Shown here piece by piece: positions 2,940 to 59,203 of a stretch of 64,000 nt of DNA. Within the stretch, counting starts at the first letter, position 1. Each line of letters begins with the position of its first letter. Both the position numbers and the translations under genes were made by a program. The notes beneath the pieces were generated by a model. The model had not been told where the DNA came from. It saw only the letters and a list, made by a program, of their open reading frames with translations, and ran no database searches. Location: contig NC_133619.1 in the NCBI RefSeq assembly GCF_048593235.1, forward strand, positions 330,536,454 through 330,600,453, given 5' to 3'. Origin of the DNA: Sminthopsis crassicaudata. Lineage: Eukaryota.

Positions 2940-3920
2940 GGAGCCTCTGGTTGAAAGGATATTGAAATTTTAGTCACTTAACTTGGAAAATTCCAAATTG
3001 CTTTCCAAAGGGTCGCACAGTTCCACCAACAATAAAATTATTATGTCTATCATCCCATAACTTCTCCACCAGTAGATATTGACATTTTTTGGTTCTCTTA
3101 GCCAAATTTTACTTGTCAGATGAAACATGAAGGTTTTTTTCCTTTTCTCTTATGACTAGTAATTTGATTAGGAATACTCTACAATGATTCCTTTGAGACC
3201 TTTAAAGTCATATCCTTTGACCACTTATCTATTGAGGAATCATGATTACTCCTTTGTAAAAATTCAATTCCAACTTCATTTACAAAAGCACAATTCCCCC
3301 TCTCTTCCATATTCAATGAGAAAACAAAAAAACAAAACCCAGGCTACATCAAGCAACACAAAAAGAAAAACTTGACCACAAGAACCATAAGAGGGTCAAG
3401 AGAAGTAAGCAAGAGACAAAAGATGAAATTAGAAATAAGATTAGGATTTAGTACAAAAAAATTAAAGGAAGAATCATTTAAAATAAAAACTGAAAAAGTA
3501 GTGAATTTCCTGAAAAAAAAAAAAAAAACCAGAATTCTGCAAAGAAATTTGAGATATTGAGACAAGAGATCTAAGAATTAATTAATCAAAGGATTGAAAA
3601 ATAAAAGAAAATATAATGTATCCGCCATCAAAATCAGCTGACTTGAAAAACAGGTTGAGGAGACATCATTGAAGCATCACTGGTTTCCTTGAATACCTCA
3701 ATCAAACTAAAACCTTGGACACTGTTTCCAAAAGGTCCTAACTCTCCTCAAACTTGCTAGAATCCCAGAAAAAATATAGTTTTAGAGGTGCCATATTTAA
3801 CAACAACAAAATATAAATAAATGGAAGAAATATTCATGGACAAAGAAAATGATTGCTTTTTGGCAGATGGCATGATGGTGTACTTTAAAAAGCCTGGGAA
3901 AGTCTTAGCCAGGCATGACA
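2940..3920. mobile_element. Old scrambled L1 fragments within the repeat unit
   Basis: Antisense ORF2-like piece at ~2950-3080. An ORF1-like lysine/glutamate-rich piece at ~3400-3800. The peptide FLADGMMVYFKKP (3821..4003 ORF) resembles the L1 RT motif FADDMIVYLENP. Confidence 0.6.
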
Positions 3921-4739
3921 TAAACCAACAAGAACCATCACCTGTTCTGGGGTTAACCTCAGCAGAAAGAGATAGGGAAAGAAATGATTCAAAACAACTA
4001 TAAAATGGGTAAAATATTTGTGTCACAGATTTGTGTCACAGGGGAATCAGATAAATAAAACCACAAAATACATTTAAAAAGATAGAATTCTCCACATGAG
4101 TACAGCAGTCACTCATGACTTGATCCTCACATTGACTGATCTGAAGCTTTAACATGTAACTTAGCTAAACAAGTTTGATTCTCCTTGAGCAGCCTGGGGC
4201 TCTCTCCTCTCTGGGGTTCAATAGCAGTTTCACACTTAGTAAAGACAAGACGTCCACTGAGGTAAACTGTGCTAAACTGGAACGGGGGAGGGGACAGGTT
4301 GCAAGGCACAGGATCCCATCAATGCCTAGGCAATGCAGGACCACACAGGTCACAGGGAAAGGCCAATGACCAGTCAGCCCAGGGCCCAGGCAGGGAACAC
4401 TGGAGCCAAAGCAGGAAAGCAGGGCATCCCCGGGGCCTGGCAGGAAGCTTGACACCAGCACAATTGACAGTATTCGATGGTGTCTGAAATCCTTTGGACA
4501 CAGTCAGCAATGACCTGGGGTTTTCCTTTGGTTAAAGTGCCAAACTGGAGAAAACAGTTCTGTGCTGCATTGCCTAGGTGTGAACACCCTGGTGAGTCCC
4601 CAGCCCCAGGAATACAATGAAATCCAGAAGTGAAAACTCACCCAGGTGAGAACTCTCACTAGGGAGAAACTGGGGTCTTTATCAGGCCAGAGGTTGACAC
4701 CTTGATGATAGATGAGGGGAGGGGCTAAGAGGGAAGGCC

Positions 4740-4777
4740 TATAAAAGAGCCCACTAGATGGACTCCTGTCATTTTCC
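4740..4777 (+). promoter_or_regulatory. Core promoter of TRIM copy 1: TATA box plus initiator
   Basis: TATAAAAG at 4740-4747 and TCATTTT (YYANWYY) with the A at 4771, placing the TATA at -31. The TATA is retained in the other copies on the minus strand at 22080-22087, 36695-36702, 43831-43838, 51617-51624 and 59373-59380. Confidence 0.7.
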
Positions 4778-4916
4778 TGGTTGCCAGAGCTCAGGGAAAG
4801 AACTAGTTGCACATCCTGGGTTGACTCTCTCTGAAAACAGAAGAGCTCAGGGAAAGAACTGGTTCCCTAGCCTTAGTGGATTATCTCTGGAAAAAAGGCC
4901 TAGAAAACCTAGGAAC

Positions 4917-6548
4917 ATGGAAGCCAAAATCTGCTTTGAAAGCCTCAGAGTGGGGGCCTCCTGTCCCCTGTGCTTGGGCCATTGCATGGACCCAGTGACT
5001 CTCGAGTGTGGCCACACCTTCTGCACAGAGTGTCTTGCCAGCTCCTGGAAGGACATCTGCCCTCCAACAGCCTGCCCGGTGTGCAGCACAGCCACTGCCT
5101 TGGAAGACACGGTCCCCGACAGGGGGCTGCAGGATCTGGCTAACCCTGGCAAGCTGCAGAGAGCTCCCCTACTGCAGAGCCTCGGGGACCTGCCCACCTG
5201 TGACAAACACGGCCTACAGCACACCTTGTTCTGTGAGGAGGATCAGAGACCCTTGTGCGGACCCTGCTTTTTAAGCCCAGAGCACCAGAAGCACAGAGTT
5301 CTGCTCCTGGATGCGGCCGTCACTCAGTGCATGGAGAAGCTCGAGGCCACAGGCAAGAGTTTAAGGACCCAGAAGAAGAGATTTCAGATGGAATTGGGAT
5401 TTGAGGAAATCCGAGAGGCGCAGTGGGAGAAGGACGGCCGCCTGCTCAAAGCCTTGCTCGTGTCTGAATATGAGAAAATGCACCAGTTCTTGGGGGAGGA
5501 AGAAGAGATTCAACTGCAGACATTGGACCAGGAAGCAAGAGGCAATTTGGAGAACAAGAAAAGCCCCTTCCGAAAGAACCTTGGACTGCTAATGAAGCCA
5601 AAGAAGCAGCCCCTGCAGGGGCTCAAGGCTCAGAAGCAGGCTGTGAAGTCTGAATGGGAGCAAAAGCTCCACTTCTTGTCAGAGGAAAAGAAGCGACACC
5701 TGCAGAGGCTGGACCAAGAAGTCACAGACAACCTGGCCAAGTTTGAGGAGAGCAAGACCAGAATGAACCAAGAGATCCACAAGCTGGACATGCTGATAGC
5801 AGACATAGAGAAGAATTCTGTTCAGCCTCCTCTTGAAATGCTCCAGGAGGCAAAAGGCACATTGGGAAGGAGTGAGGAGCTACTTCTTCAGAAGCCAGTG
5901 GTGGCTTCCCCGACATGGACCATGCGCCCCGTCTCCGGAATGGCAGAAACGCTGCTGACTTTCCACAGGCGTCTGTGTCTGGACCCTCAAACAGCCAATC
6001 CCCATCTGGCCCTGTCTGAAGACCTGCAGAGGGTGGAATACCGTGCTGTCCCACAGGATGTCCCCGACAACCCAGAGAGATTCGATTCTGCCCTCTGGGT
6101 CTTGGCCAAGCAGAAGTTCACTTCAGGGAGACACTACTGGGAAGTGGTGGTGGGGGAGCAGAGGGAGTGGGAGGTGGGCGTCTGTGAGGAACGGATCAGA
6201 AGGAAGGGGGATGATGGCCAGAAGGTTCTGGGAGACAGGCTGACCCTGGCGGCCTTCACCTTTGGCAGGGACTTTCACTTGTGGCATTCAAAGCAAACCG
6301 TTCCTTCCTGCAAACCAGTTCAGAAGGTGGGCGTTTTCCTTGATTATGAAAGAGGGCACGTAGCTTTTTACAATGCTGCAGATGGAACCCTAATCTACAG
6401 TCCCCCAAATAAGGCTTTTCAAGGTCCCCTTCTCCCTTGTTTCTCTCCTTGCTTTCCAAAGGGGAAAAACACCTCTGGATGTCTGCATATCTGTCCCAGG
6501 AGGGACAATGCTCAAGAAGATGATCGTTCCCAAAATGAGATTTTCTAA
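4917..6548 (+). CDS. Intronless tripartite-motif protein (RING-B-box2-coiled coil-PRY/SPRY), TRIM60/61/75-like, copy 1, 543 aa
   Basis: C3HC4 RING (CPLC..CGHTFCTEC..CPVC, C16-C56), B-box2 (CDKH..FCEED..CGPC..H..H from C95), coiled coil, and B30.2 motifs LDPQTANPHLALSED, GRHYWEV and VGVFLDYE. ATG 4917 has a strong Kozak context (gaacATGG). The ORF track starts at ATG 4758, which lies upstream of the predicted TSS. Confidence 0.92.
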   Translation: MEAKICFESLRVGASCPLCLGHCMDPVTLECGHTFCTECLASSWKDICPPTACPVCSTATALEDTVPDRGLQDLANPGKLQRAPLLQSLGDLPTCDKHGLQHTLFCEEDQRPLCGPCFLSPEHQKHRVLLLDAAVTQCMEKLEATGKSLRTQKKRFQMELGFEEIREAQWEKDGRLLKALLVSEYEKMHQFLGEEEEIQLQTLDQEARGNLENKKSPFRKNLGLLMKPKKQPLQGLKAQKQAVKSEWEQKLHFLSEEKKRHLQRLDQEVTDNLAKFEESKTRMNQEIHKLDMLIADIEKNSVQPPLEMLQEAKGTLGRSEELLLQKPVVASPTWTMRPVSGMAETLLTFHRRLCLDPQTANPHLALSEDLQRVEYRAVPQDVPDNPERFDSALWVLAKQKFTSGRHYWEVVVGEQREWEVGVCEERIRRKGDDGQKVLGDRLTLAAFTFGRDFHLWHSKQTVPSCKPVQKVGVFLDYERGHVAFYNAADGTLIYSPPNKAFQGPLLPCFSPCFPKGKNTSGCLHICPRRDNAQEDDRSQNEIF

Positions 6549-6610: not shown

Positions 6611-6616
6611 AATAAA
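6611..6616 (+). terminator. Poly(A) signal of copy 1
   Basis: AATAAA 63 nt after the stop, with a second at 6728-6733. Equivalents on the minus strand at 20211-20216, 34824-34829, 41962-41967, 49746-49751 and 57502-57507. Confidence 0.55.
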
Positions 6617-6919
6617 GTTATATTAAACTTATATTATAAAGTTTATTATTTATTAATATGTTAATAATGATTAGTTAATATTAAGTTGTTATTTATTGTC
6701 AAAAGCCAAAAAAGAAAAAATCTTTCAAATAAAAAGTTCATCCTCTAAAAAGTACTTTTTGCTTTAAGGTGTTTTAATTAAAATTTTTCTTCTTTTTGTA
6801 GAAAATATCCTTACCTTTACTTTGATTATACATCCACGTTAATTATCAGTCAGTTTACATTTTTTCTGTCACTGGAACTTATTAATTTCCTTCCAAATAC
6901 GTTCATTGCCAAATTAGAG

Positions 6920-16439: not shown

Positions 16440-18760
16440 GTATTTGGTGAATGCAGTTGAGGGTTTTAACATTAACCCATGGACCACTGCACGTGTTGAG
16501 GTGCAACCCAAGGCTGGAGATAGAATTGGACTTTCAGACTATGCACCTGTGATTGTACATACTATGATATTAAAACATATGGAACCATTTATCTTGGTTA
16601 CCAATCCTCATCCATATCCTGTGAATTTAAAGGGAGATCATCCAATTGCTGAAGCACTCCCATTACATCCCTTTGGTGAGGTGAATTTTACTCACACGCA
16701 GTTAGAGAGAGTGGAGTTTTATACCTGTAGAACTACAAAGATAGTCTCTGGAGAGTCGGAACTCCCCTTTGCTTACCTTGTGGATTTTTCACTTCCACAG
16801 GTGGGCTTGACTGCCCAACCCCCTCCGAGTATTTATAAAACAGTGTTTATTTATAGAATGATTTGAGAAACTGCTGTCTTAATCACCAGTATAGATAGTC
16901 TGTGATCTATGACCCAGGAGGAGAAGGAACATCAGATTTATTGATTCACACTCCTGAAATACAATTTAGTATTAGTAATTCAAACTTTGACTTGAGGCAA
17001 AAGAATTTAAGGATATTATCGACCGGAGCTTTCATTGCTGAGTGTCCTTTGCTCATTATCTGTAGGAATCATTGAAAAGGCTGGTAGACACAGATGTAAG
17101 TAATATAGCTATTAGATGTGCCAGCTGGGTTAGTAATTGGTTAAAAGCCACCGCAAATACCTATGTGTCTGGTATAAAAGGGTCTATGACAACTAAAATT
17201 AGTGCTACCGCTTAGAAATGGAAATTTAAATTTAAGACAGAAAAATTTATTTGTTTTACAGTTGAAAGTTCCCCCATTGACCAGTGGGGAAGAGGATTCT
17301 TAAAAAATTCAAATTTTATTAGGCACAGGACAGAAAAGACTTAACCAAGGACATTTATAAGCTTCTCTAAGTCCTTGGAATCCCCTTAAATTTGTTATAA
17401 AAAGGAAGTTTGGGGAATGGAGAATGTTTATTGATCTGAGAAAAGTAAATGGACACGTGGAGACAACTGAAGCTCTTCAACTTGGGCTTCCATCTCCTCA
17501 ATAGCTTGAGGAATGGTCTTTTAGGATTAAAAATTAGATCCCTCTAGAGAGGTTATGAAGGAATTTGTCTTTTCAGTGCCCAGCATTAATTCAGCTGAGC
17601 CTTATAAAGGATTTGAATGGACAGCCTTGTCACATGGAATAAAGAACAGCTCAATTTTGAGTCAAAGGCATGTGGCTGCTGACCTTGCTCCTGTGAGAAA
17701 AGTATCTCCAAGAGTTAAGGTAGTATTCCTTTTAAGAGGAAACAATACTTTAGACTCACAATACCAGCTTAAAAAAGAAGCTCTAAGCTCTAAAAGAGAT
17801 TGAATTGTTTTATCTAATATGGCTGAAAAAATAACTAAAAAATATTGGAAATATCAAATTTTGTCCTTCATCAAGGAGACAATATGAAGTGGGTGAACCT
17901 CCCAGCACAATTAGATAAAAAATTTAAATTTTACCCAGTGCTCATGGTTACAATTTCAGTAAAAACCATTGAGAAAGTAGTAAAATTATCTGGGACAAGA
18001 CCTGGTGAATTATGTATCTCTCATATCAATGTACAAATTGATGTGTATTGTGAAACCATCCCAGAGTGTAAAAATTTATTGGCTACAACTCTAAGCCTTG
18101 CACGTGGATATGTAAAAATAATTTTTGATTCAGCTTATTCAGTAGAAGTGGCACAAAGAACTGCCATAGCTCAAATAGAATTTGTAGTTTTTAATATATA
18201 TTATCAGTTGTTTAAAGAGCTTCAAGAGCGAATGAGAAAGCACTCTGGTAAATATTATATCCTACATGTCCATTTTAAGAATAGACTTTCAAATCATATC
18301 TTTTATAATCAGGCTGATAGAACCTTATATCTGCAAATTGTGATAACTAAAGAAGTTAGGAGCATAGCAAAAGGCTGTACAGCTTGTCTTTCTTTTCACT
18401 CTCCTATGTTCCCTATAGGACAAAACCCTTATGGTTTGAAATTTAATGTTTTAAGACAATGAACATTATTCATTTTAAAAGGCAGAGCACTATGTAATTA
18501 TGGATATACATCCTCAATTCTTTATGGCTTCATTCCAATGTGGAGAAGCAGCTAGGCCTGTGATCTACCATTTTTCTATTGTAGGAATCTCACATGCATT
18601 TAAGACAGATTATAGATTGGCTTATAAATATTTTGCCTTTAAGTCTTTTTGCATTGAATTTGACTCTTCCCTATTCCATTGGCATTTCTTATAGTCCTAC
18701 TAATGAAGTCATTACTGGACAGACTATTTATATCCCCAAGATGTTCTCTTTTAAACAAGA
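16440..18760 (+). pseudogene. pol: Decayed dUTPase/protease, RT, RNase H and integrase
   Basis: LVDTD (mutated DTG) at ~17081, SPWN..FVIK..WRM..DLRKVN at ~17365-17450, FSVPSINSAEPY, and an integrase-type CTAC zinc motif at ~18376. Many stops and frameshifts. Confidence 0.75.
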
Positions 18761-20278: not shown

Positions 20279-21910
20279 TTAGAAAATCTCATTTTGGGAA
20301 CGATCATCTTCTTGAGCATTGTTCCTCCTGGGACAGATATGCAGATATCCAGAGGTGTTTTTCCCCTTTGGAAAGCAAGGAGAGAAACAAGGGAGAAGGG
20401 GACCTTGAAAAGCCTTATTTGGGGGACTGTAGATTAGAGTTCCATCTGCAGCATTGTAAAAAGCTACGTGCCCTCTTTCATAATCTAGGAAAACGCCCAC
20501 CTTCTGAACTGGTTTGCAGGAAGGAACAGTTTGCTTTGAATGCCACAAGTGAAAGTCCCTGCCAAAGGTGAAGGCCGCCAGGGTCAGCCTGTCTCCCAGA
20601 ACCTTCTGGCCACCATCCCCCTTCCTTCTGATCCGTTCCTCACAGACGCCCACCTCCCACTCCTTCTGCTCCCCCACCACCACTTCCCAGTAGTGTCTCC
20701 CTGAAGTGAACTTCTGCTTGGCCAAGACCCAGAGGGCAGAATCGAATCTCTCTGGGTTGTCGGGAACATCCTGTGGGACAGCATGGTATTCCACCCTCTG
20801 CAGATCTTCAGACAGGGCCAGATGGGGATTGGCTGTTTGAGGGTCCAGACACAGACGCCTGTGGAAAGTCAGCAGCGTTTCTGCCATTCCGGAGACGGGG
20901 CGCATGGTCCATGTCGGGGAAGCCACCACTGGCTTCTGAAGAAGGAGCTCCTCACTCCTTCCCAATGTGCCTTTTGCCTCCTGGAGCATTTCAAGAGGAA
21001 GCTGAACAGAATTCTTCTCTATGCCTGCTATCAGCATGTCCAGCTTGTGGATCTCTTGCTTCATTCTGGTCTTGCTCTCCTCAAACTTTGCCAGGTTGTC
21101 TGTGACTTCTTGGTCCAGCCTCTGCAGGTGTCGCTTCTTTTCCTCTGACAGGAAGTGGAGCTTTTGCTCCCATTCAGACTTCACAGCCTGCTGCTGAGCC
21201 TTGAGCCCCTGCAGGGGCTGCTTCTTTGGCTTCATTAGCAGTCCAAGGTTCTTTCGGAAGGGGCTTTTCTTGTTCTCCAAATTGTCTCTTGCTTCCTGGT
21301 CCAATGTCTGCAGTTGAATCTCTTCTTCCTCCCCCAAGAACTGCTGCATTTTCTCATATTCAGACACAAGCAAGGCTTTGAGCAGGCGGCCGTCCTTCTC
21401 CCACTGCGCCTCTCGAATTTCCTCAAATCCCAATTCCATCTGAAATCTCTTCTTCTGGGTCCTTAAACTCTTGCCTGTGGCCTCGAGCTTCTCCATGCAC
21501 TGAGTGACGGCCGCATCCAGGAGCAGAACTCTGTGCTTCTGGTGCTCTGGGCTTAAAAAGCAGGGTCCGCACAAGGGTCTCTGATCCTCCTCACAGAACA
21601 AGGTGTGCTGTAGGCCGTGTTTGTCACAGGTGGGCAGGTCCCCGAGGCTCTGCAGTAGGGGAGCTCTCTGCATCTTGCCAGTGTTAGCCAGATCCTGCAG
21701 CCCCCTGTCGGGGACCGTGTCTTCCAAGGCAGTGGCTGTGCTGCACACCGGGCAGGCTGTTGGAGGGCAGATGTCCTTCCAGGAGCTGGCAAGACACTCT
21801 GTGCAGAAGGTGTGGCCACACTCGAGAGTCACTGGGTCCATGAAATGGCCCAAGCACAGGGGACAGGAGGCCCCCACTCTGAGGTTTTCAAAGCAGATTT
21901 TGGCATCCAT
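20279..21910 (-). CDS. Intronless TRIM, copy 2, 543 aa, located inside the provirus
   Basis: Open ORF with the same RING/B-box/coiled-coil/B30.2 motifs. TATA, Inr and AATAAA are retained. Confidence 0.9.
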   Translation of the reverse strand: MDAKICFENLRVGASCPLCLGHFMDPVTLECGHTFCTECLASSWKDICPPTACPVCSTATALEDTVPDRGLQDLANTGKMQRAPLLQSLGDLPTCDKHGLQHTLFCEEDQRPLCGPCFLSPEHQKHRVLLLDAAVTQCMEKLEATGKSLRTQKKRFQMELGFEEIREAQWEKDGRLLKALLVSEYEKMQQFLGEEEEIQLQTLDQEARDNLENKKSPFRKNLGLLMKPKKQPLQGLKAQQQAVKSEWEQKLHFLSEEKKRHLQRLDQEVTDNLAKFEESKTRMKQEIHKLDMLIAGIEKNSVQLPLEMLQEAKGTLGRSEELLLQKPVVASPTWTMRPVSGMAETLLTFHRRLCLDPQTANPHLALSEDLQRVEYHAVPQDVPDNPERFDSALWVLAKQKFTSGRHYWEVVVGEQKEWEVGVCEERIRRKGDGGQKVLGDRLTLAAFTFGRDFHLWHSKQTVPSCKPVQKVGVFLDYERGHVAFYNAADGTLIYSPPNKAFQGPLLPCFSPCFPKGKNTSGYLHICPRRNNAQEDDRSQNEIF

Positions 21911-31458: not shown

Positions 31459-32969
31459 GATCAATCACACAGGAAGCAAGCTGATGGGAGAAAGGGATTA
31501 CAATTAGGGAGGATAGAGTTGTATGTAGCTGGGACAATTGAGATACCCCCTGGAGAGGTGAAATCTGTTCCTCTCCAGCCTATGGATCCCTGGCCTCCAG
31601 GCACAGTAGGCTTGACCATTTCACCTCCTGAGAGTACTTACAAGACAGTGTCCATCCATACACTGATGTGGGAAACTGGGGAATGTGTAGATAATATCCC
31701 AGTCACTAATTCAGGTAGACAAAGTGTGACTTATCAACCAGGGGAAGTAGTAGCATCAGGTTTACTGATTCAGACTCCTAATAAGCAACCTGGTGACAGT
31801 CACCCAGATTCTGACTCCAAGCAGCAAAACCCAGGAATATACTGGACAGCAGCTCTGGCAGCTGACCGACCTATGCTCACCATCTGTATAAATGACATAT
31901 CATTAGAAGGATTGGTAGACACAGGTGCAGATCTCACAGTCATTAGAGATGCCAACTGGCCCAGTCACTGGCCAAAGACTAAGGCAGACACCTACATGTC
32001 TGGGGTAGGAGGATCAATAGCAGTTGAAGTTAGTGCTACCCCTTTGAGATGGATATTTGAAGGTGAAACAGGAGTTTTTATTCCTTTTGTAGCTGAAGAA
32101 ATCCCCATCAATTTGTGGGGAAGAGACATTTTAAAACAATTAGGATCATAAATGAGTACTTCGGTTTTTTAAGCAGGGCTGCTATTGAAGGCCGGCCACC
32201 ACTTTCACCTGTTCCTATCCAATAGAAAACTGATACACCAGTGTGGATAGAACAGTGGCCCTTAGGTAACAATAAAATTCAGGCCTTACTAGATATAGTA
32301 CAGGAACAACTTGACCAAGGACACTTACAACCTTCTCTAAGTCCTTGGAATTCCCCAGTATTTGTTGTAAAAAAGGAATCTGGAAAATGGAGGATGATGA
32401 CTGATTTAAGAAAGGTAAATGAACAGATGGAAACTATGGAAACTCTTCAGTCTGGACTTCCATCTCCTACTCAGTTGCCTAGAGAATGGCCTCTGTGGGT
32501 TATAGACATTAAGGATTGTTTCTATTCTATCCCTCTAGATAAGGAGGATATGAAAAGATTTGCCTTTTCAGTGCCCAGCATTAACTTAGCTGAGCCTTAT
32601 AAAAGATATGAATGGACAGGTTTGCCACAGGGAATGAAAAACAGAGCTACTATGTGTCAAATGTATGTTGCTACTGCTCTTAGTCCAGTAAGAAAAGCAT
32701 TTCCAAAAGTAATATTGTTACATTATATGGATGATATATTGGGATGTGCACCTGAGGAACAAATGTTATAAGCATGTCTATAAAAACCATAGAAACACTA
32801 AGGAATTATAAATTGCACATAGCTTCAGAAAAGATTCAAAGACATGCTCCTTTTCAATATTTAGGATATGAAGTATATCCTAAGGTGCTTACAGAACAAA
32901 AACAACAGAGAAGTTGAACACATTAAATAACTTTCAGAAATTGATAGGAGATATCCAATGGATGCGTCC
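31459..32969 (+). pseudogene. pol: Betaretrovirus-like pro-pol fragment (dUTPase-like region, protease, RT N-half)
   Basis: EGLVDTGADLTVI and NLWGRDIL (protease). [25 protein letters not shown] and LHYMDDIL (RT). Premature stop at 32769-32771. Less decayed than the 13.7-25.3 kb provirus. Confidence 0.88.
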
Positions 32970-33632: not shown

Positions 33633-33724
33633 TTAGAAAATCTCATTTTGGGGGACTGTAGATTAGAGTTCCATCTGCAGCATTGGAAAAAGCTATGTGC
33701 CCTCCTTCATAATTAAGGAAAGCG
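33633..33724 (-). pseudogene. Relic 3' end of a seventh TRIM copy
   Basis: Stop-proximal SPRY sequence with an internal deletion, followed (on the minus strand) by the typical TRIM 3' flank at 33305-33632. More diverged than the intact copies. Confidence 0.85.
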
Positions 33725-48200: not shown

Positions 48201-49830
48201 GAAGACCTGAGTTAAAATATGGCCTCAAGTATTTGTTAGGTGTGTGACCCTGTGCAACAGGAAAGAAGGAAAGAAAGGAGAAAGGAAGGAAAGAAAGCAA
48301 GCAAGCAAGAAAGCAAGAATGAAAGAAATAAGGAAGGAGGGAAGGAAAGAATGAAAAAAAGAAGAATGAAAGAAGGAGGGTAGGAAAGAAAGAAAAGAAG
48401 GAAGGAAAAAAGGAAAGAATGAAAGAAAGAAAAAAAGATAAGAAAGAAAAAAGGAAGGAAAGATGAGCTTGATGAATGGAAAGAAACATTGGAAGATATG
48501 CATGAAATGATGATTCAGTGATTTCAGTTGTATTTGACTCCTCAAGACCCTATTTGAGATTTTCTTTTTAAAAAAAAAAGATAGACGGCTGGTTTGACAT
48601 TTTCTTCTCTAGTTACTTTACAAAGGTCAAAGGATTAAGCCCAGACTCACTCTGGTAGAAGTGTCTAAGGCCAAATTTCAGTTTCAGTCTTCTTGATTCC
48701 AGGCCTGGCTTTGTGCACTATATCTCCACCTATTTTGCCCCTCCCCTCCCCAAAAGAGTGGCTACAACATAAAGACCTCAACAATGCAAATGAAAAGAAG
48801 GGCCCATACAAAGCCATCAAAAATGGATGTCACAAAATTAGAAAGCTCTAAAATGATTACATAATAGAAAAAAACAAGAAGACACGCCTACTCCATCCCT
48901 TTGATGAACTGGGCGGTCAATAGATATTGCATATTACACATGCATTGAGATTTTTTTAGAGTATTTTTCTTTTTTTTTTTCCCCTTTGAAAATTACTATT
49001 TGTTGAATCACATGATTCTCTGAAAGGATGAGAGGGAAACTGTGAGAAACTGTGAGGATGTTAAAAAAAAAAAAAAGATTTTAATAAAAAAAATGTAGAT
49101 CCTCACATTTATGTAATACTTTACCCTTTTGAAAAATGGCCCTCATAAATATTTGGGAAAGTGAGTGGTTCAATTATTAGAAGCTGCACTTTACAAATGA
49201 GGGACCATCTCAAGTCCAAAAGGATAAGTGACTTACAAAAAGCCACACTGCTGGTCAGTGCCAGCCTGGGACTCACAGCCAGATCTCCGCCCTTTATGAC
49301 CTGTGTTATTTCTCTGCAGTGCCTTGTGCTGTCTGCCAATACCATCTAGCAACCTTTAGGCTAAGGATCCCCTGAGAACCAAACATTTCTCAAGTAGATA
49401 TTGCAGAGTTGTTATCTATTAGCTCCCAATGCTGTTGTAACAAACTGCCTCTAATTTGGCCATGAACGTATTTGGAAGGAAATTAATAAGTTCAAGTGAC
49501 AGAAAAAAATGTAAAGTGACTGACAGCTTGGATGTATAATCAAAGTAAAGGTAAGGATATTTTCTATAAAAAGAAGAAAATTTTAATTAAAACACCTTAA
49601 TGCAAAAAGTAATATTTAGAGGATGAACTTTTTATTTGAAAGATTTTTTTTTTTGGCTTTTGACAATAAATAACAACTTAATATTAACTAATTAATATTA
49701 ACATATTAATAATTAATAAACTTTATAATATAAGTTTAATATAACTTTATTGACAAATTCAACAAGGGTTCTCATGAATGGAAAGTCATTGCAGAGGTTG
49801 TTTTGGTTGCTTGGATTAGAAAATCTCATT

Positions 49831-51447
49831 TTAGGAACGATCATCTTCTTGAGCATTGTCCCTCCTGGGACAGATAAGCAGATATCCAGAGGTGTTTTTC
49901 CCCCTTGGAAAGCAAGGAGAGAAACAAGGGAGAAGGGGACCTTGAAAAGCCGTATTTGGGGGACTGTAGATTAGAGTTCCATCTGCAGCATTGTAAAAAG
50001 CTACGTGCCCTCTTTCATAATCTAGGAAAACGCCCACCTTCTGAACTGGTTTGCAGGAAGGAACAGTTTGCTTTGAATGCCACAAGTGAAAGTCCCTGCC
50101 AAAGGTGAAGGCCGCCAGGGTCAGCCTGTCTCCCAGAACCTTCTGGCCACCATCCCCCTTCCTTCTGATCCGTTCCTCACAGACGCCCACCTCCCACTCC
50201 CTCTGCTCCCCCACCACCACTTCCCAGTAGTGTCTCCCTGAAGTGAACTTTTGCTTGGCCAAGACCCAGAGGGCAGAATCGAATCTCTCTGGGTTGTCGG
50301 GGACATCCTGTGGGACAGCACGGTATTCCACCCTCTGCAGATCTTCAGACAGGGCCAGATGGGGATTGGCTGTTTGAGGGTCCAGACACAGACGCCTGTG
50401 GAAAGTCAGCAGCGTTTCTGCCATTCCGGAGACGGGGCGCATGGTCCATGTCGGGGAAGCCACCACTGGCTTCTGAAGAAGTAGCTCCTCACTCCTTCCC
50501 AATGTGCCTTTTGCCTCCTGGAGCATTTCAAGAGGAAGCTGAACAGAATTCTTCTCTATGTCTGCTATCAGCATGTCCAGCTTGTGGATCTCTTGCTTCA
50601 TTCTGGTCTTGCTCTCCTCAAACTTGGCCAGGTTGTCTGTGACTTCTTGGTCCAGCCTCTGCAGGTGTCGCTTCTTTTCCTCTGACAAGAAGTGGAGCTT
50701 TTGCTCCCACTCAGACTTCACAGCCTGCTTGTGAGCCTCGAGCCCCTGCAGGGGCTGCTTCTTTGGCTTCATTAGCAGTCCAAGGTTCTTTTGGAAGGGG
50801 CTTTTCTTGTTCTCCAAATTGCCTCTTGCTTCCTGGTCTAATGTCTGCAGTTGAATCTCTTCTTCCTCCCCCAAGAACTGCTGCATTTTCTCATATTCAG
50901 ACAAGAGCAAGGCTTTGAGAAGGCGGCCGTCCTTCTCCCACTGCGCCTCTCGGATTTCCTCAAATCCCAATTCCATCTGAAATCTCTTCTTCTGGGTCCT
51001 TAAACTCTTGCCTGTGGCCTCGAGCTTCTCCATGCACTGAGTGACGGCCGCATCCAGGAGCAGAACTCTGTGCTTCTGGTGCTCTGGGCTTAAAAAGCAG
51101 GGTCCGCACAAGGGTCTCTGATCCTCCTCACAGAACAAGGTGTGCTGTAGGCCGTGTTTGTCACAGGTGGGCAGGTCCCCGAGGCTCTGCAGTAGGGGAG
51201 CTCTCTGCATCTTGCCAGTGTTAGCCAGATCCTGCAGCCCCCTGTCGGGGACCGTGTCTTCCAAGGCAGTGGCTGTGCTGCACACCGGGCAGGCTGTTGG
51301 AGGGCAGATGTCCTTCCAGGAGCTGGCAAGACACTCTGTGCAGAAGGTGTGGCCACACTCGAAAGTCACTGGGTCCATGCAATGGCCCAAGCACAGGGGA
51401 CAGGAGGCCCCCACTCTGAGGCTTTCAAAGCAGATTTTGGCATCCAT
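49831..51447 (-). CDS. Intronless TRIM, copy 5, 538 aa
   Basis: Open ORF. A CAA>TAA change removes the last five residues (QNEIF). Confidence 0.9.
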   Translation of the reverse strand: MDAKICFESLRVGASCPLCLGHCMDPVTFECGHTFCTECLASSWKDICPPTACPVCSTATALEDTVPDRGLQDLANTGKMQRAPLLQSLGDLPTCDKHGLQHTLFCEEDQRPLCGPCFLSPEHQKHRVLLLDAAVTQCMEKLEATGKSLRTQKKRFQMELGFEEIREAQWEKDGRLLKALLLSEYEKMQQFLGEEEEIQLQTLDQEARGNLENKKSPFQKNLGLLMKPKKQPLQGLEAHKQAVKSEWEQKLHFLSEEKKRHLQRLDQEVTDNLAKFEESKTRMKQEIHKLDMLIADIEKNSVQLPLEMLQEAKGTLGRSEELLLQKPVVASPTWTMRPVSGMAETLLTFHRRLCLDPQTANPHLALSEDLQRVEYRAVPQDVPDNPERFDSALWVLAKQKFTSGRHYWEVVVGEQREWEVGVCEERIRRKGDGGQKVLGDRLTLAAFTFGRDFHLWHSKQTVPSCKPVQKVGVFLDYERGHVAFYNAADGTLIYSPPNTAFQGPLLPCFSPCFPRGKNTSGYLLICPRRDNAQEDDRS

Positions 51448-57400: not shown

Positions 57401-57586
57401 TTTTTTTTTTGGCTTTTGACAATAAATAACAACTTAATATTAACTAATTAATATTAACATATTAATAATTAATAAACTTTATAATATAAGTTTAATATAA
57501 CTTTATTGACAAATTCAACAAGGGTTCTCATGAATGGAAAGTCATTGCAGAGGTTGTTTTGGTTGCTTGGATTAGAAAATCTCATT

Positions 57587-59203
57587 TTAGGAACGATCAT
57601 CTTCTTGAGCATTGTCCCTCCTGGGACAGATAAGCAGATATCCAGAGGTGTTTTTCCCCCTTGGAAAGCAAGGAGAGAAACAAGGGAGAAGGGGACCTTG
57701 AAAAGCCTTATTTGGGGGACTGTAGATTAGAGTTCCATCTGCAGCATTGTAAAAAGCTACGTGCCCTCTTTCATAATCTAGGAAAACGCCCACCTTCTGA
57801 ACTGGTTTGCAGGAAGGAACAGTTTGCTTTGAATGCCACAAGTGAAAGTCCCTGCCAAAGGTGAAGGCCGCCAGGGTCAGCCTGTCTCCCAGAACCTTCT
57901 GGCCACCATCCCCCTTCCTTCTGATCCGTTCCTCACAGACGCCCACCTCCCACTCCCTCTGCTCCCCCACCACCACTTCCCAGTAGTGTCTCCCTGAAGT
58001 GAACTTTTGCTTGGCCAAGACCCAGAGGGCAGAATCGAATCTCTCTGGGTTGTCGGGGACATCCTGTGGGACAGCACGGTATTCCACCCTCTGCAGGTCT
58101 TCAGACAGGGCCAGATGGGGATTGGCTGTTTGAGGGTCCAGACACAGACGCCTGTGGAAAGTCAGCAGCGTTTCTGCCATTCCGGAGACGGGGCGCATGG
58201 TCCATGTCGGGGAAGCCACCACTGGCTTCTGAAGAAGTAGCTCCTCACTCCTTCCCAATGTGCCTTTTGCCTCCTGGAGCATTTCAAGAGGAAGCTGAAC
58301 AGAATTCTTCTCTATGTCTGCTATCAGCATGTCCAGCTTGTGGATCTCTTGCTTCATTCTGGTCTTGCTCTCCTCAAACTTGGCCAGGTTGTCTGTGACT
58401 TCTTGGTCCAGCCTCTGCAGGTGTTGCTTCTTTTCCTCTGACAAGAAGTGGAGCTTTTGCTCCCACTCAGACTTCACAGCCTGCTTCTGAGCCTCGAGCC
58501 CCTGCAGGGGCTGCTTCTTTGGCTTCATTAGCAGTCCAAGGTTCTTTCGGAAGGGGCTTTTCTTGTTCTCCAAATTGCCTCTTGCTTCCCGGTCTAATGT
58601 CTGCAGTTGTATCTCTTCTTCCTCCCCCAAGAACTGGTGCATTTTCTCATATTCAGACAAGAGCAAGGCTTTGAGCAGGCGGCCGTCCTTCTCCCACTGC
58701 GCCTCCCGGATTTCCTCAAATCCCAATTCCATCTGAAATCTCTTCTTCTGGGTCCTTAAACTCTTGCCTGTGGCCTCGAGCTTCTCCATGCACTGAGTGA
58801 CGGCCGCATCCAGGAGCAGAACTCTGTGCTTCTGGTGCTCTGGGCTTAAAAAGCAGGGTCCGCACAAGGGTCTCTGATCCTCCTCACAGAACAAGGTGTG
58901 CTGTAGGCCGTGTTTGTCACAGGTGGGCAGGTCCCCGAGGCTCTGCAGTAGGGGAGCTCTCTGCATCTTGCCAGTGTTAGCCAGATCCTGCAGCCCCCTG
59001 TCGGGGACCGTGTCTTCCAAGGCAGTGGCTGTGCTGCACACCGGGCAGGCTGTTGGAGGGCAGATGTCCTTCCAGGAGCTGGCAAGACACTCTGTGCAGA
59101 AGGTGTGGCCACACTCGAAAGTCACTGGGTCCATGCAATGGCCCAAGCACAGGGGACAGGAGGCCCCCACTCTGAGGCTTTCAAAGCAGATTTTGGCATC
59201 CAT
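57587..59203 (-). CDS. Intronless TRIM, copy 6, 538 aa
   Basis: Open ORF with the same early stop as copy 5. Confidence 0.9.
   Translation of the reverse strand: MDAKICFESLRVGASCPLCLGHCMDPVTFECGHTFCTECLASSWKDICPPTACPVCSTATALEDTVPDRGLQDLANTGKMQRAPLLQSLGDLPTCDKHGLQHTLFCEEDQRPLCGPCFLSPEHQKHRVLLLDAAVTQCMEKLEATGKSLRTQKKRFQMELGFEEIREAQWEKDGRLLKALLLSEYEKMHQFLGEEEEIQLQTLDREARGNLENKKSPFRKNLGLLMKPKKQPLQGLEAQKQAVKSEWEQKLHFLSEEKKQHLQRLDQEVTDNLAKFEESKTRMKQEIHKLDMLIADIEKNSVQLPLEMLQEAKGTLGRSEELLLQKPVVASPTWTMRPVSGMAETLLTFHRRLCLDPQTANPHLALSEDLQRVEYRAVPQDVPDNPERFDSALWVLAKQKFTSGRHYWEVVVGEQREWEVGVCEERIRRKGDGGQKVLGDRLTLAAFTFGRDFHLWHSKQTVPSCKPVQKVGVFLDYERGHVAFYNAADGTLIYSPPNKAFQGPLLPCFSPCFPRGKNTSGYLLICPRRDNAQEDDRS

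Follow-up and report, generated by a model that had tools for sequence, protein, structure and literature searches.

We have analysed a 64,000-nucleotide (nt) stretch of the Sminthopsis crassicaudata genome (contig NC_133619.1, positions 330,536,454 to 330,600,453, forward strand; hereafter the window) that carries six full-length TRIM ubiquitin-ligase genes, all with a repeat inside the coiled coil of the encoded protein. The window genes are retrocopies of a TRIML1-like parent that possessed two tandem copies of the 231-nt, phase-0 exon 3, which encodes the middle and C-terminal part of the coiled-coil helix H1. This second central coiled-coil exon has been carried since before the australidelphian orders split from one another, and probably since before their split from the opossums. 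We regard the explanation by exon duplication and retrocopying as highly probable; the mechanism proposed below has about an even chance.

An internal repeat in the coiled coil

The repeat is described here for copy 1, an intronless class C-IV TRIM gene of 543 codons (4917..6545, + strand; stop codon 6546-6548) delineated from the list of open reading frames (ORFs), Pfam matches and homologues. Its first core motif, SEYEKMHQFLGEEEEIQLQTLDQEARGNL, is the translation of nt 5463-5549 (residues 183-211), and the second, SEWEQKLHFLSEEKKRHLQRLDQEVTDNL, that of nt 5649-5735 (residues 245-273); the latter corresponds in alignment to the central motif of the coiled coil in solved TRIM5 structures. The two cores are identical at 15 of 29 amino acids (aa) and at 61 of 87 nt (70%), and are offset by 186 nt, in frame. 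A sequence-only reading of this DNA had proposed the repeat, and its coordinates, identity and spacing were reproduced exactly. As in any coiled coil, E, K, Q and L abound in both segments, so that chance or a generic heptad likeness has to be weighed. Against it, the BLOSUM62 score of one core with the other is 68, compared with 24.2 ± 4.1 and a maximum of 42 in 500 shuffles (z = 10.8; none of the 500 reaches 68), and within this coiled coil the runner-up among all 29-mers scores 23. The nucleotide identity of 61/87 likewise contrasts with 27 ± 4 (31%) for codon shuffles, and the matches are distributed evenly across the three codon positions. Moreover, the two copies are separate exons in intron-bearing relatives. 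We consider the role of mere chance to be practically nil and interpret the repeat as a true internal duplication within the coiled coil, as had been claimed.

All six full-length TRIM copies of the window contain the repeat. The six genes are intact single ORFs that are 97-98% identical to one another. In a MAFFT alignment with 71 homologues, the net insertion is exactly 62 aa when measured against canonical TRIML1-type proteins (464-474 aa), and eutherian TRIML1 is without it; the earlier proposal that the duplication accounts for the 543-aa length, by an insertion of about 62 aa, is thus borne out. The similarity extends past the two 29-aa cores, and the ‘linker’ that lies between them itself belongs to the repeated unit.

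The repeat is a duplicated exon

What is the origin of the repeated unit? Dog TRIML1 (L001) is laid out like a classical TRIM gene: coding exon 1 extends to aa 142, exon 2 has 96 nt (aa 143-174) and exon 3 has 231 nt (aa 175-251), all in phase 0. The long form of Dromiciops (P0008; locus L002) is also intron-bearing: exon 1 (1001-1417) and the 96-nt exon 2 (1566-1661) are followed by exon 3a (1921-2127; 207 nt, 69 aa) and exon 3b (3772-4002; 231 nt, 77 aa), bounded by ag|...|gt sites and in phase 0. Since exon 3a measures 207 nt, the 69-aa insertion of Dromiciops is precisely one extra exon, and the protein junction ...PMEMHK|LQTQAM... joins the end of an exon 3 to the start of an exon 3. The introns between exons 3a and 3b are 1.3-1.6 kb long in Dromiciops and the devil, Sarcophilus (1.6 kb in Dromiciops), and the Dromiciops intron flanks of the two exons retain no similarity beyond the exons themselves.

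In the Tasmanian devil long form (P0005; L004), exon 2 measures 96 nt, exon 3a 195 nt, encoding 65 aa that end in ...SVERIK, and exon 3b 219 nt, encoding 73 aa that begin with AQKQSVK. The final 12 intron bases before this exon 3b (L004 5381-5392) are ttggaaatccag, which match L-E-I-Q codons; L-E-I-Q is retained at the start of exon 3b in P0015, while other Australidelphia have L-E-G-Q. Because ttggaaatccag matches these former codons, the dasyurid exon 3b acceptor appears to have moved 12 nt downstream. The exon maps of dog, Dromiciops and devil can be projected onto copy 1 of the window. The 96-nt exon 2 equivalent lies at 5334..5429 (+ strand; aa 140-171, EKLEATGKSL...AQWE, placed by the exon maps and the translation). 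The exon 3a equivalent, the extra repeat copy 1, follows at 5430..5627 (+; aa 172-237, 66 aa, placed in the same way), and the exon 3b equivalent, repeat copy 2, at 5628..5846 (+; aa 238-310, 73 aa, from the exon maps). The exon 3b equivalent starts AQKQAVK, and its junction ...LQGLK(237)|A(238)QKQAVK is the same as the devil 3a|3b splice junction. Exon 3a adds 66 aa and the shifted exon 3b acceptor removes 4 aa, which gives the net gain of 62 aa.

Within the exon 3a equivalent the first 40 aa are well conserved, and the tail (aa 212-237) has decayed to the basic, proline-containing ‘linker’. The sequence-only reading took this segment for a separate joiner of the two repeats. A linker profile built from 15 australidelphian proteins aligns with the exon 3b tail (hhalign P = 3e-4), placing esk.Sq.q..lnlpM-------.seqQPvemlk over esk.kmtq.IhnL.m.mseiek.f.klpiemLq, and the 7-residue gap fits the exon lengths of 207 versus 231 nt. 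On account of this better alignment to the exon 3b tail, we identify the linker as the degenerate C-terminal part of exon 3a and discard the idea of a joiner. Another placement, as the head of copy 2, was considered: HMMER put aa 213-244 on model positions 24-55, with 6/31 identities on a fixed diagonal (P = 0.024 for protein and 0.10 for nucleotides) and an hhalign P of 0.055. We rejected this candidate in view of the hhalign match to the exon tail, the EMLQ|LEGQ junction and the maps of the exons.

Between orders, the linker is the least conserved segment of the coiled coil (41% identity versus 50-71% elsewhere), and the cores are among its best-conserved parts (62-65%). Outside dasyurids the linker keeps a constant length of 37 aa, and nearly all forms have 1-4 prolines. 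Its net charge is +9 in the window protein and +9 to +12 in the subclade to which this belongs, versus -3 to +1 outside dasyurids; given the values in the other orders, the basic character is recent and dasyurid-specific. The earlier suggestion that the linker might serve as a nuclear localization signal leans on a loose bipartite pattern, defined as two basic residues, a 10-12-residue spacer and at least three basic residues in five. This pattern is found at aa 214-231 (KK SPFRKNLGLLM KPKKQ) and in Sarcophilus P0003, and is absent from Antechinus P0002; the same loose pattern matches unrelated sites, for example in the SPRY domain of Petaurus.

The repeat is ancient in marsupials

The repeat is present in five marsupial orders. 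In the 71-homologue alignment all insertions occupy one site of the coiled coil, the canonical state being that of eutherian TRIML1 and most marsupial paralogues. Their size is 62 aa in the window protein and Sarcophilus P0003, 60-64 aa in other dasyurid forms, 67 aa in Macrotis, 69 aa in diprotodonts and Dromiciops, 91 aa in the opossum-type protein P0014 and 105 aa in Monodelphis P0019. The repeat period follows suit, with 60-62 aa in dasyurids, 67-69 aa in bandicoot, diprotodonts and Dromiciops, and 91 and 105 aa in the opossum-type proteins. In a tree computed with the insert columns removed, the long forms constitute one clade (24 rows; Shimodaira-Hasegawa-like approximate likelihood ratio test, SH-aLRT, 100). 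A hidden Markov model (HMM) of the canonical coiled coil and L2, built from 35 short forms, finds two matches in each long form, and their model ranges overlap; in the window protein they are model positions 1-87 and 24-162. Among the best 120 database matches, overlapping double matches are confined to the marsupial long forms; one additional double match is a fused shark gene model. The assumption that the repeat is special to the window copies is therefore not upheld, given that the same repeat occurs across marsupial orders. Concerning its absence from the closest relatives across mammals, the earlier reading holds for eutherian TRIML1, which lacks the repeat, and fails for the closest marsupial homologues, which share it.

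The opossum-type proteins differ in their junctions. In P0014 (...MMLQ|EKIQSIKNTL) and P0019 (...EMLK|SPGMWKTL) the end of exon 3 is followed by the start of exon 2. The self-match of P0019 is ungapped, with 53/114 residues identical at a period of 105 aa, which equals the 109 aa of exons 2+3 minus two 2-aa deletions. The range of the Monodelphis gene equals the length of its coding sequence (CDS), hence it is intronless. In Dromiciops, a decayed copy of exon 2 is embedded in the 3a-3b intron (L002 about 3107-3182; 74% identity over 76 nt, E = 6e-8). This relic scores 41 bits, whereas the best of 200 shuffles reaches 26.5; it no longer has its AG and GT sites, and its frame is broken. The near miss between 105 and 109 aa had made an in-exon duplication at a microhomology in the opossum form a candidate, and the two 2-aa deletions together with the Dromiciops relic resolve the discrepancy.

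Based on these observations, we propose a stepwise model for the origin of the repeat. A genomic tandem duplication of the segment containing exons 2 and 3 would have generated the order 2-3a-2'-3b. Exon 2' is still included in the opossum-type proteins, with their periods of 105 or 91 aa. In Australidelphia exon 2' decayed within the intron and exon 3a was shortened to 207 nt (69 aa); in dasyurids exon 3a measures 195-198 nt and the exon 3b acceptor appears to have shifted 12 nt downstream. Finally, a spliced dasyurid mRNA was retrocopied and then amplified to a tandem array with a unit of ~7.75 kb. The simplest history is one duplication of exons 2 and 3 before the opossum/Australidelphia split, with exon 2' subsequently lost in Australidelphia. 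As opossum-type proteins include a second exon 2 and Dromiciops keeps its relic, the sequences indicate that the duplication is probably older than this split, which took place roughly 70-80 million years ago.

Two other histories have to be confronted with these data. A recent tandem duplication of 186 nt inside the exon, arisen within this dunnart gene family and joined by a new linker, is what the single-exon genes of the window and their exact, in-frame period of 186 nt would suggest at first sight, and it is the origin implied by the sequence-only reading. It is contradicted by the occurrence of the same repeat in five orders, by the Dromiciops and devil copies being separate exons with a 1.3-1.6 kb intron between them, by the coincidence of K237|A238 with the devil 3a|3b splice junction and by the alignment of the linker with the exon 3b tail. 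We give this history hardly any credence; the duplication occurred at the level of an exon in an intron-bearing gene. Two independent duplications, of exons 2+3 in the opossum lineage and of exon 3 alone in Australidelphia, would make the repeat convergent, and the different junction types, exon 3|exon 2 in P0019 and P0014 versus exon 3|exon 3 in Australidelphia, speak for it. In a tree of the individual repeat copies, the second copies of Australidelphia are monophyletic (19/19; SH-aLRT 99), and one change is enough to part first copies from second copies; the didelphid second copies are left unresolved relative to the australidelphian ones, which is compatible with independent origins and counts against a single event. 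A further point on that side is that the single origin of the 2-3a-2'-3b order rests on one Dromiciops relic plus the protein junctions. However, the decayed exon 2 is located exactly between Dromiciops exons 3a and 3b, as a single 2-3a-2'-3b ancestor predicts, and both the monophyly of the long forms and the one-change separation of first and second copies are at odds with convergence. We therefore judge two origins unlikely and retain the single duplication of exons 2 and 3.

Two members of the long-form clade are without the repeat, P0012 of Notamacropus eugenii (468 aa) and P0035 (485 aa). P0012 is a hybrid, 3a-like up to ...LDKE and 3b-like from VKDNLAK. Its sequence fits a recombination between exons 3a and 3b, and P0012 is an apparent candidate for a natural revertant to standard length, or else a model artefact.

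Retrocopying and tandem amplification

The window gene is colinear with the exons only of devil L004 and Dromiciops L002. Its junctions at nt 5333|5334, 5429|5430, 5627|5628 and 5846|5847 lie in a continuous ORF from which the parental introns are precisely absent. Further upstream, an equivalent of the devil 5' exon (4485..4840, + strand; blastn against L004, 82% over 358 nt, and the ORF list) is joined in the window without the ~1-kb intron present in the devil gene. At the other end, blastn homology to L004 stops at 6621, five bases past an AATAAA signal (6611..6616, + strand); such an end just after the polyadenylation signal fits a processed retrocopy. The sequence past 6621 is A/T-rich and has no clean poly(A) tract, and the marks of retrocopying at the 3' end may have eroded since the insertion predates the Sminthopsis/Antechinus split. 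This date follows from the Antechinus orthologue (L003; P0002), which is intronless, colinear with the window gene including its flanks and 75% identical, with an intact ORF. On the sequence evidence, then, the window genes are processed retrocopies of a spliced dasyurid mRNA.

An upstream in-frame ATG in copies 1 (4758-4916, +) and 4 (43662-43820, -) would extend the ORF to 596 aa. The stretch upstream of the standard ATG has 82% nt identity to L004 1276-1633, an exon translated as an N-terminal extension in the devil model P0005; given this homology to a translated exon, the true start codon (4758 or 4917 in copy 1) is uncertain.

The remaining copies are on the - strand. Copies 2 (20282..21910), 3 (34897..36525) and 4 (42033..43661) encode 543 aa each, with their exon 3a + 3b equivalents at 20981-21397, 35596-36012 and 42732-43148, respectively. 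Copies 5 (49834..51447) and 6 (57590..59203) encode 538 aa, the stop being five codons early, with exon 3a + 3b equivalents at 50518-50934 and 58274-58690. The array has a period of about 7.75 kb and flanks that are 95-96% identical; copies 4, 5 and 6 are arranged head-to-tail (40600-64000), and one copy of the array is inverted, copy 1 being opposite in orientation. Runs of N of 352-419 bases recur once per unit, at 38808, 46732, 54519 and 62274, and from this recurrence the same element is masked or unassembled in every unit. The early stop common to copies 5 and 6 (49819-49833 and 57575-57589, - strand; 538 versus 543 aa in the other four) suggests that they are the youngest duplicate pair of the array.

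Is the array no more than a set of young, non-functional retro-pseudogenes, and the repeat mere inherited baggage? The genes are retrocopies, two of them have a slightly early stop and the ratio of non-synonymous to synonymous differences per site (pN/pS) among the six copies is 0.53 overall, exceeding 1 in the RING/B-box region (aa 1-130; about 1.7, from pairwise sums of 60 non-synonymous versus 10 synonymous differences, which are small counts). Two facts must be set directly against our own interpretation: the differences per region are too few to show constraint on the insert, and the window genes are known here from sequence alone rather than from expression or protein. On the other side, the six ORFs of 538-543 codons are all intact, the sole disrupted copy being a 25-aa relic, and the coiled-coil cores have a low pN/pS of 0.12-0.24, albeit at few sites. 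The intact intronless Antechinus orthologue and the related Sarcophilus models further indicate that the frame has been kept since before the dasyurid genera split. With six intact ORFs and an intact orthologue, the window genes are probably not simple pseudogenes, and we find the baggage explanation improbable.

The TRIM60/61/75 group is intronless. Like the window, these retrogenes and the TRIM5 genes of the cow, where TRIM5 has expanded (PMC2151084), are instances of near-identical PRY-SPRY TRIMs with a single coding exon tandemly amplified in one lineage. Unlike the window proteins, cow TRIM5 and TRIM60/61/75 keep a coiled coil of standard length, and no duplicated coiled-coil exon has been reported for them in the literature searched.

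Relationship to TRIML1

The window proteins are class C-IV TRIMs, with a RING, a B-box and a coiled coil followed by PRY/SPRY. In copy 1, Pfam places the RING at aa 16-56 (zf-C3HC4_4, 31.2 bits with a cut-off of 30; zf-C3HC4, 27.1 with a cut-off of 21), a type 2 B-box at aa 93-130 (zf-B_box, 32.5 bits, cut-off 24.1) and the PRY-SPRY at aa 354-512, made up of PRY (aa 354-401, 68.6 bits) and SPRY (aa 405-512, 57.3 bits). The coiled coil/L2 region occupies aa 131-353; its helical nature is seen in the AlphaFold2 helices and in a phmmer match to TRIM5 coiled-coil structures. With Foldseek, the PRY-SPRY resembles the B30.2 structures of TRIM21 and BTN3 (template modelling score, TM, about 0.86-0.89 normalised to the target). 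The closest database match is a Sminthopsis crassicaudata protein with 98% identity, and the close relatives are all marsupial and named ‘TRIML1’ by NCBI, a name that reflects best similarity only.

The closest non-marsupial matches are to eutherian TRIML1, with 33-46% local identity over 53-98% of the query and E values of about 1e-90. The window proteins share with TRIML1 the order RING, coiled coil, PRY/SPRY, and their coiled coil goes back to exons of the same size and phase (96 nt and 231 nt, phase 0). A B-box, present in the window protein, is also reported for marsupial TRIML1 (PMC12007913). They differ from TRIML1 in being encoded by intronless retrocopies, in having two copies of exon 3 (+62 aa) and in being tandemly amplified. 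The window protein does not behave as a TRIML1 orthologue: it falls within the marsupial-only clade of 24 long forms, which is sister to 38 short paralogues, and its CDS is intronless, whereas dog TRIML1 spans 24.8 kb and Vombatus P0060 6.3 kb. By tree and gene structure, the window proteins are classed as paralogues of TRIML1 and not orthologues. Zhang et al. 2020 defined a single marsupial TRIML1 orthologue group and set aside other ‘potential marsupial TRIML1’ proteins as non-orthologues (PMC6993854); the repeat is not mentioned in that study (PMC6993854), and a 2025 paper goes no further than noting the B-box of marsupial TRIML1.

A model for the duplicated coiled coil

What might a second central exon do to a TRIM coiled coil? 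The known TRIM coiled coils are all antiparallel dimers (PMC10643145). In solved structures H1 is an unbroken helix of about 110 residues within a 17-nm antiparallel dimer, and the rigid core of TRIM72 consists of the central hendecad part of H1:H1', H3:H3' and the PRY-SPRY (PMC10643145, PMC12549529). The window protein has the same order of H1, H2/L2 and PRY-SPRY as TRIM5alpha (4TN3/5W9A), TRIM72 (7XT2) and pyrin/TRIM20 (4CG4), and its copy 2 aligns to the central coiled-coil motif of TRIM5 (phmmer E = 1e-4). It departs from the solved TRIMs in that H1 is predicted as 85 + 70 helical residues with a loop between them and the central part present twice. An uninterrupted H1 of ~110 residues with a single central segment is thus not what is found: there are two HMM matches, a predicted loop at 216-231 and 62 additional aa.

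AlphaFold2 was run on the monomer, both at full length with a 64-sequence alignment (mean predicted local distance difference test, pLDDT, 84; predicted template modelling score, pTM, 0.68) and on the isolated coiled coil (pLDDT 90, pTM 0.76). Both models contain a helix at 131-215, a low-confidence loop at about 216-231, a helix at 232-301 and a helix at 305-323; the loop (aa 216-231; 5562..5609, + strand) is predicted as non-helical, with a pLDDT of about 58-73. A Foldseek search with the coiled-coil model retrieved only long antiparallel hairpins (dynein stalk, Smc arms, AhlC, Maxi antifreeze), all with E > 0.01 and a TM of about 0.3, and with the full-length model it returned PRY-SPRY matches only, which are uninformative on coiled-coil geometry. 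The high pTM and the hairpin matches suggest that the two long helices are folded back on each other in the model. Like this predicted fold, the matched proteins have two long helices of one chain pairing antiparallel; they have no sequence relationship to the window protein, and their hairpin is ancestral and does not derive from a duplicated homodimer interface.

These observations lead us to the following model. Each chain has two copies of the self-complementary central segment of H1, and between them lies a loop of roughly 16-25 residues that contains proline and corresponds to the decayed exon 3a tail. In ordinary TRIMs the central H1 pairs with the same segment of the partner across the dyad and carries the H3/PRY-SPRY core. 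Since the segment occurs twice in one chain with a flexible loop between, the same contacts become possible within a chain or between chains. In the hairpin version, the two halves would fold into an intramolecular antiparallel coiled coil that mimics the H1:H1' interface within one chain. The outcome would be a shorter scaffold, in which each coiled-coil unit bears a single RING/B-box and a single PRY-SPRY, versus the 17-nm bivalent rod.

The alternative is an extended, domain-swapped dimer in which helix 131-215 of each chain pairs with helix 232-301 of its partner. The canonical register would be kept at both ends, the loops would sit at the dyad, the rod would lengthen from about 17 to about 23-25 nm and the PRY-SPRY domains would be set apart. 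In its favour, the same residue pairings can be made between chains, as the antiparallel register x <-> c-x appears from the HMM coordinates to be preserved on central duplication; known TRIM coiled coils are, without exception, antiparallel dimers; and monomer AlphaFold2 runs are blind to a swapped state. The last point is also an objection to the hairpin, because the monomer prediction of an obligate dimer tends to place intermolecular contacts within the chain and is biased to a hairpin. Equally adverse is that the hairpin topology is deduced from the pTM and weak Foldseek matches (E > 0.01, TM about 0.3). What counts against the swapped form is the general principle that a flexible proline-containing loop of at least 16 residues would favour closure over swapping, and that the coiled-coil-only model, with its pTM of 0.76, matches only hairpins. 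As loop length and models agree in this respect, we favour the hairpin, to which we assign about an even chance, and treat the swapped dimer as a serious but less probable solution. The longer rod that had been anticipated from the sequence survives as one of these two architectures; the AlphaFold2 monomers are compact helix-loop-helix structures, and their fold matches only antiparallel hairpins. Another idea, a constant sum of the copy 1 end and the copy 2 start reflecting symmetric trimming at the hairpin tip, arose from the fuzzy ends of local alignments and failed once the junctions were placed on exon borders.

Other features of the window

An ORF of 210 aa at 31519-32148 (+ strand), with the aspartyl protease domain of a retrovirus (Pfam RVP, E = 1.9e-24), belongs to a fragmentary endogenous retrovirus located between TRIM copies 2 and 3. 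A lone SPRY fragment of 25 aa at 33649-33723 (- strand), 80% identical to TRIM aa 473-497, is the remnant of another, destroyed TRIM copy. Two ORFs longer than 200 aa, at 17845-18459 (+) and 38768-39406 (-), have no Pfam match and are probably due to chance or derived from repeats; the second shares part of its length with an N run.

Implications of a duplicated coiled-coil exon

The long-form sequences are already present in public annotation. Our literature searches retrieved no described duplication of a TRIM coiled coil and nothing relevant on this marsupial family; in the searchable literature we found no description of the duplicated exon, its stepwise reduction (105, 91, 69, 62 aa), the exon-2 relic, the acceptor shift or the retrocopy array. 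What are the implications for the TRIM family? The coiled coil of TRIMs is seen as a molecular ruler that has been conserved: its 17-nm antiparallel dimer sets how far the catalytic RING/B-box ends lie from the central, substrate-binding PRY-SPRY pair. In the long forms the history of a change to this ruler can be read step by step, from the duplication of an exon pair through the loss of one exon, the shrinkage of exon 3a and the acceptor shift to retrocopying and tandem amplification, and the window genes are a clean example of a retrogene that records the exon structure of its parent. We infer the functional meaning of the repeat from predicted structures. Tentatively, we envisage that a two-chain antiparallel scaffold became a single-chain pseudo-dimer, that marsupials have preserved this architecture over tens of millions of years, and that its recent amplification in dasyurids went together with a tip loop that had newly become basic. 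The natural variants with periods of 105, 91, 69 and 62 aa, together with the candidate wallaby revertant P0012, offer tests of helix length, interruption and valency, and bear on TRIM dimerisation, higher-order assembly and E3 activity. If true, the single-chain pseudo-dimer would be a natural test of the part that coiled-coil length and valency play in ligase activation and target avidity.

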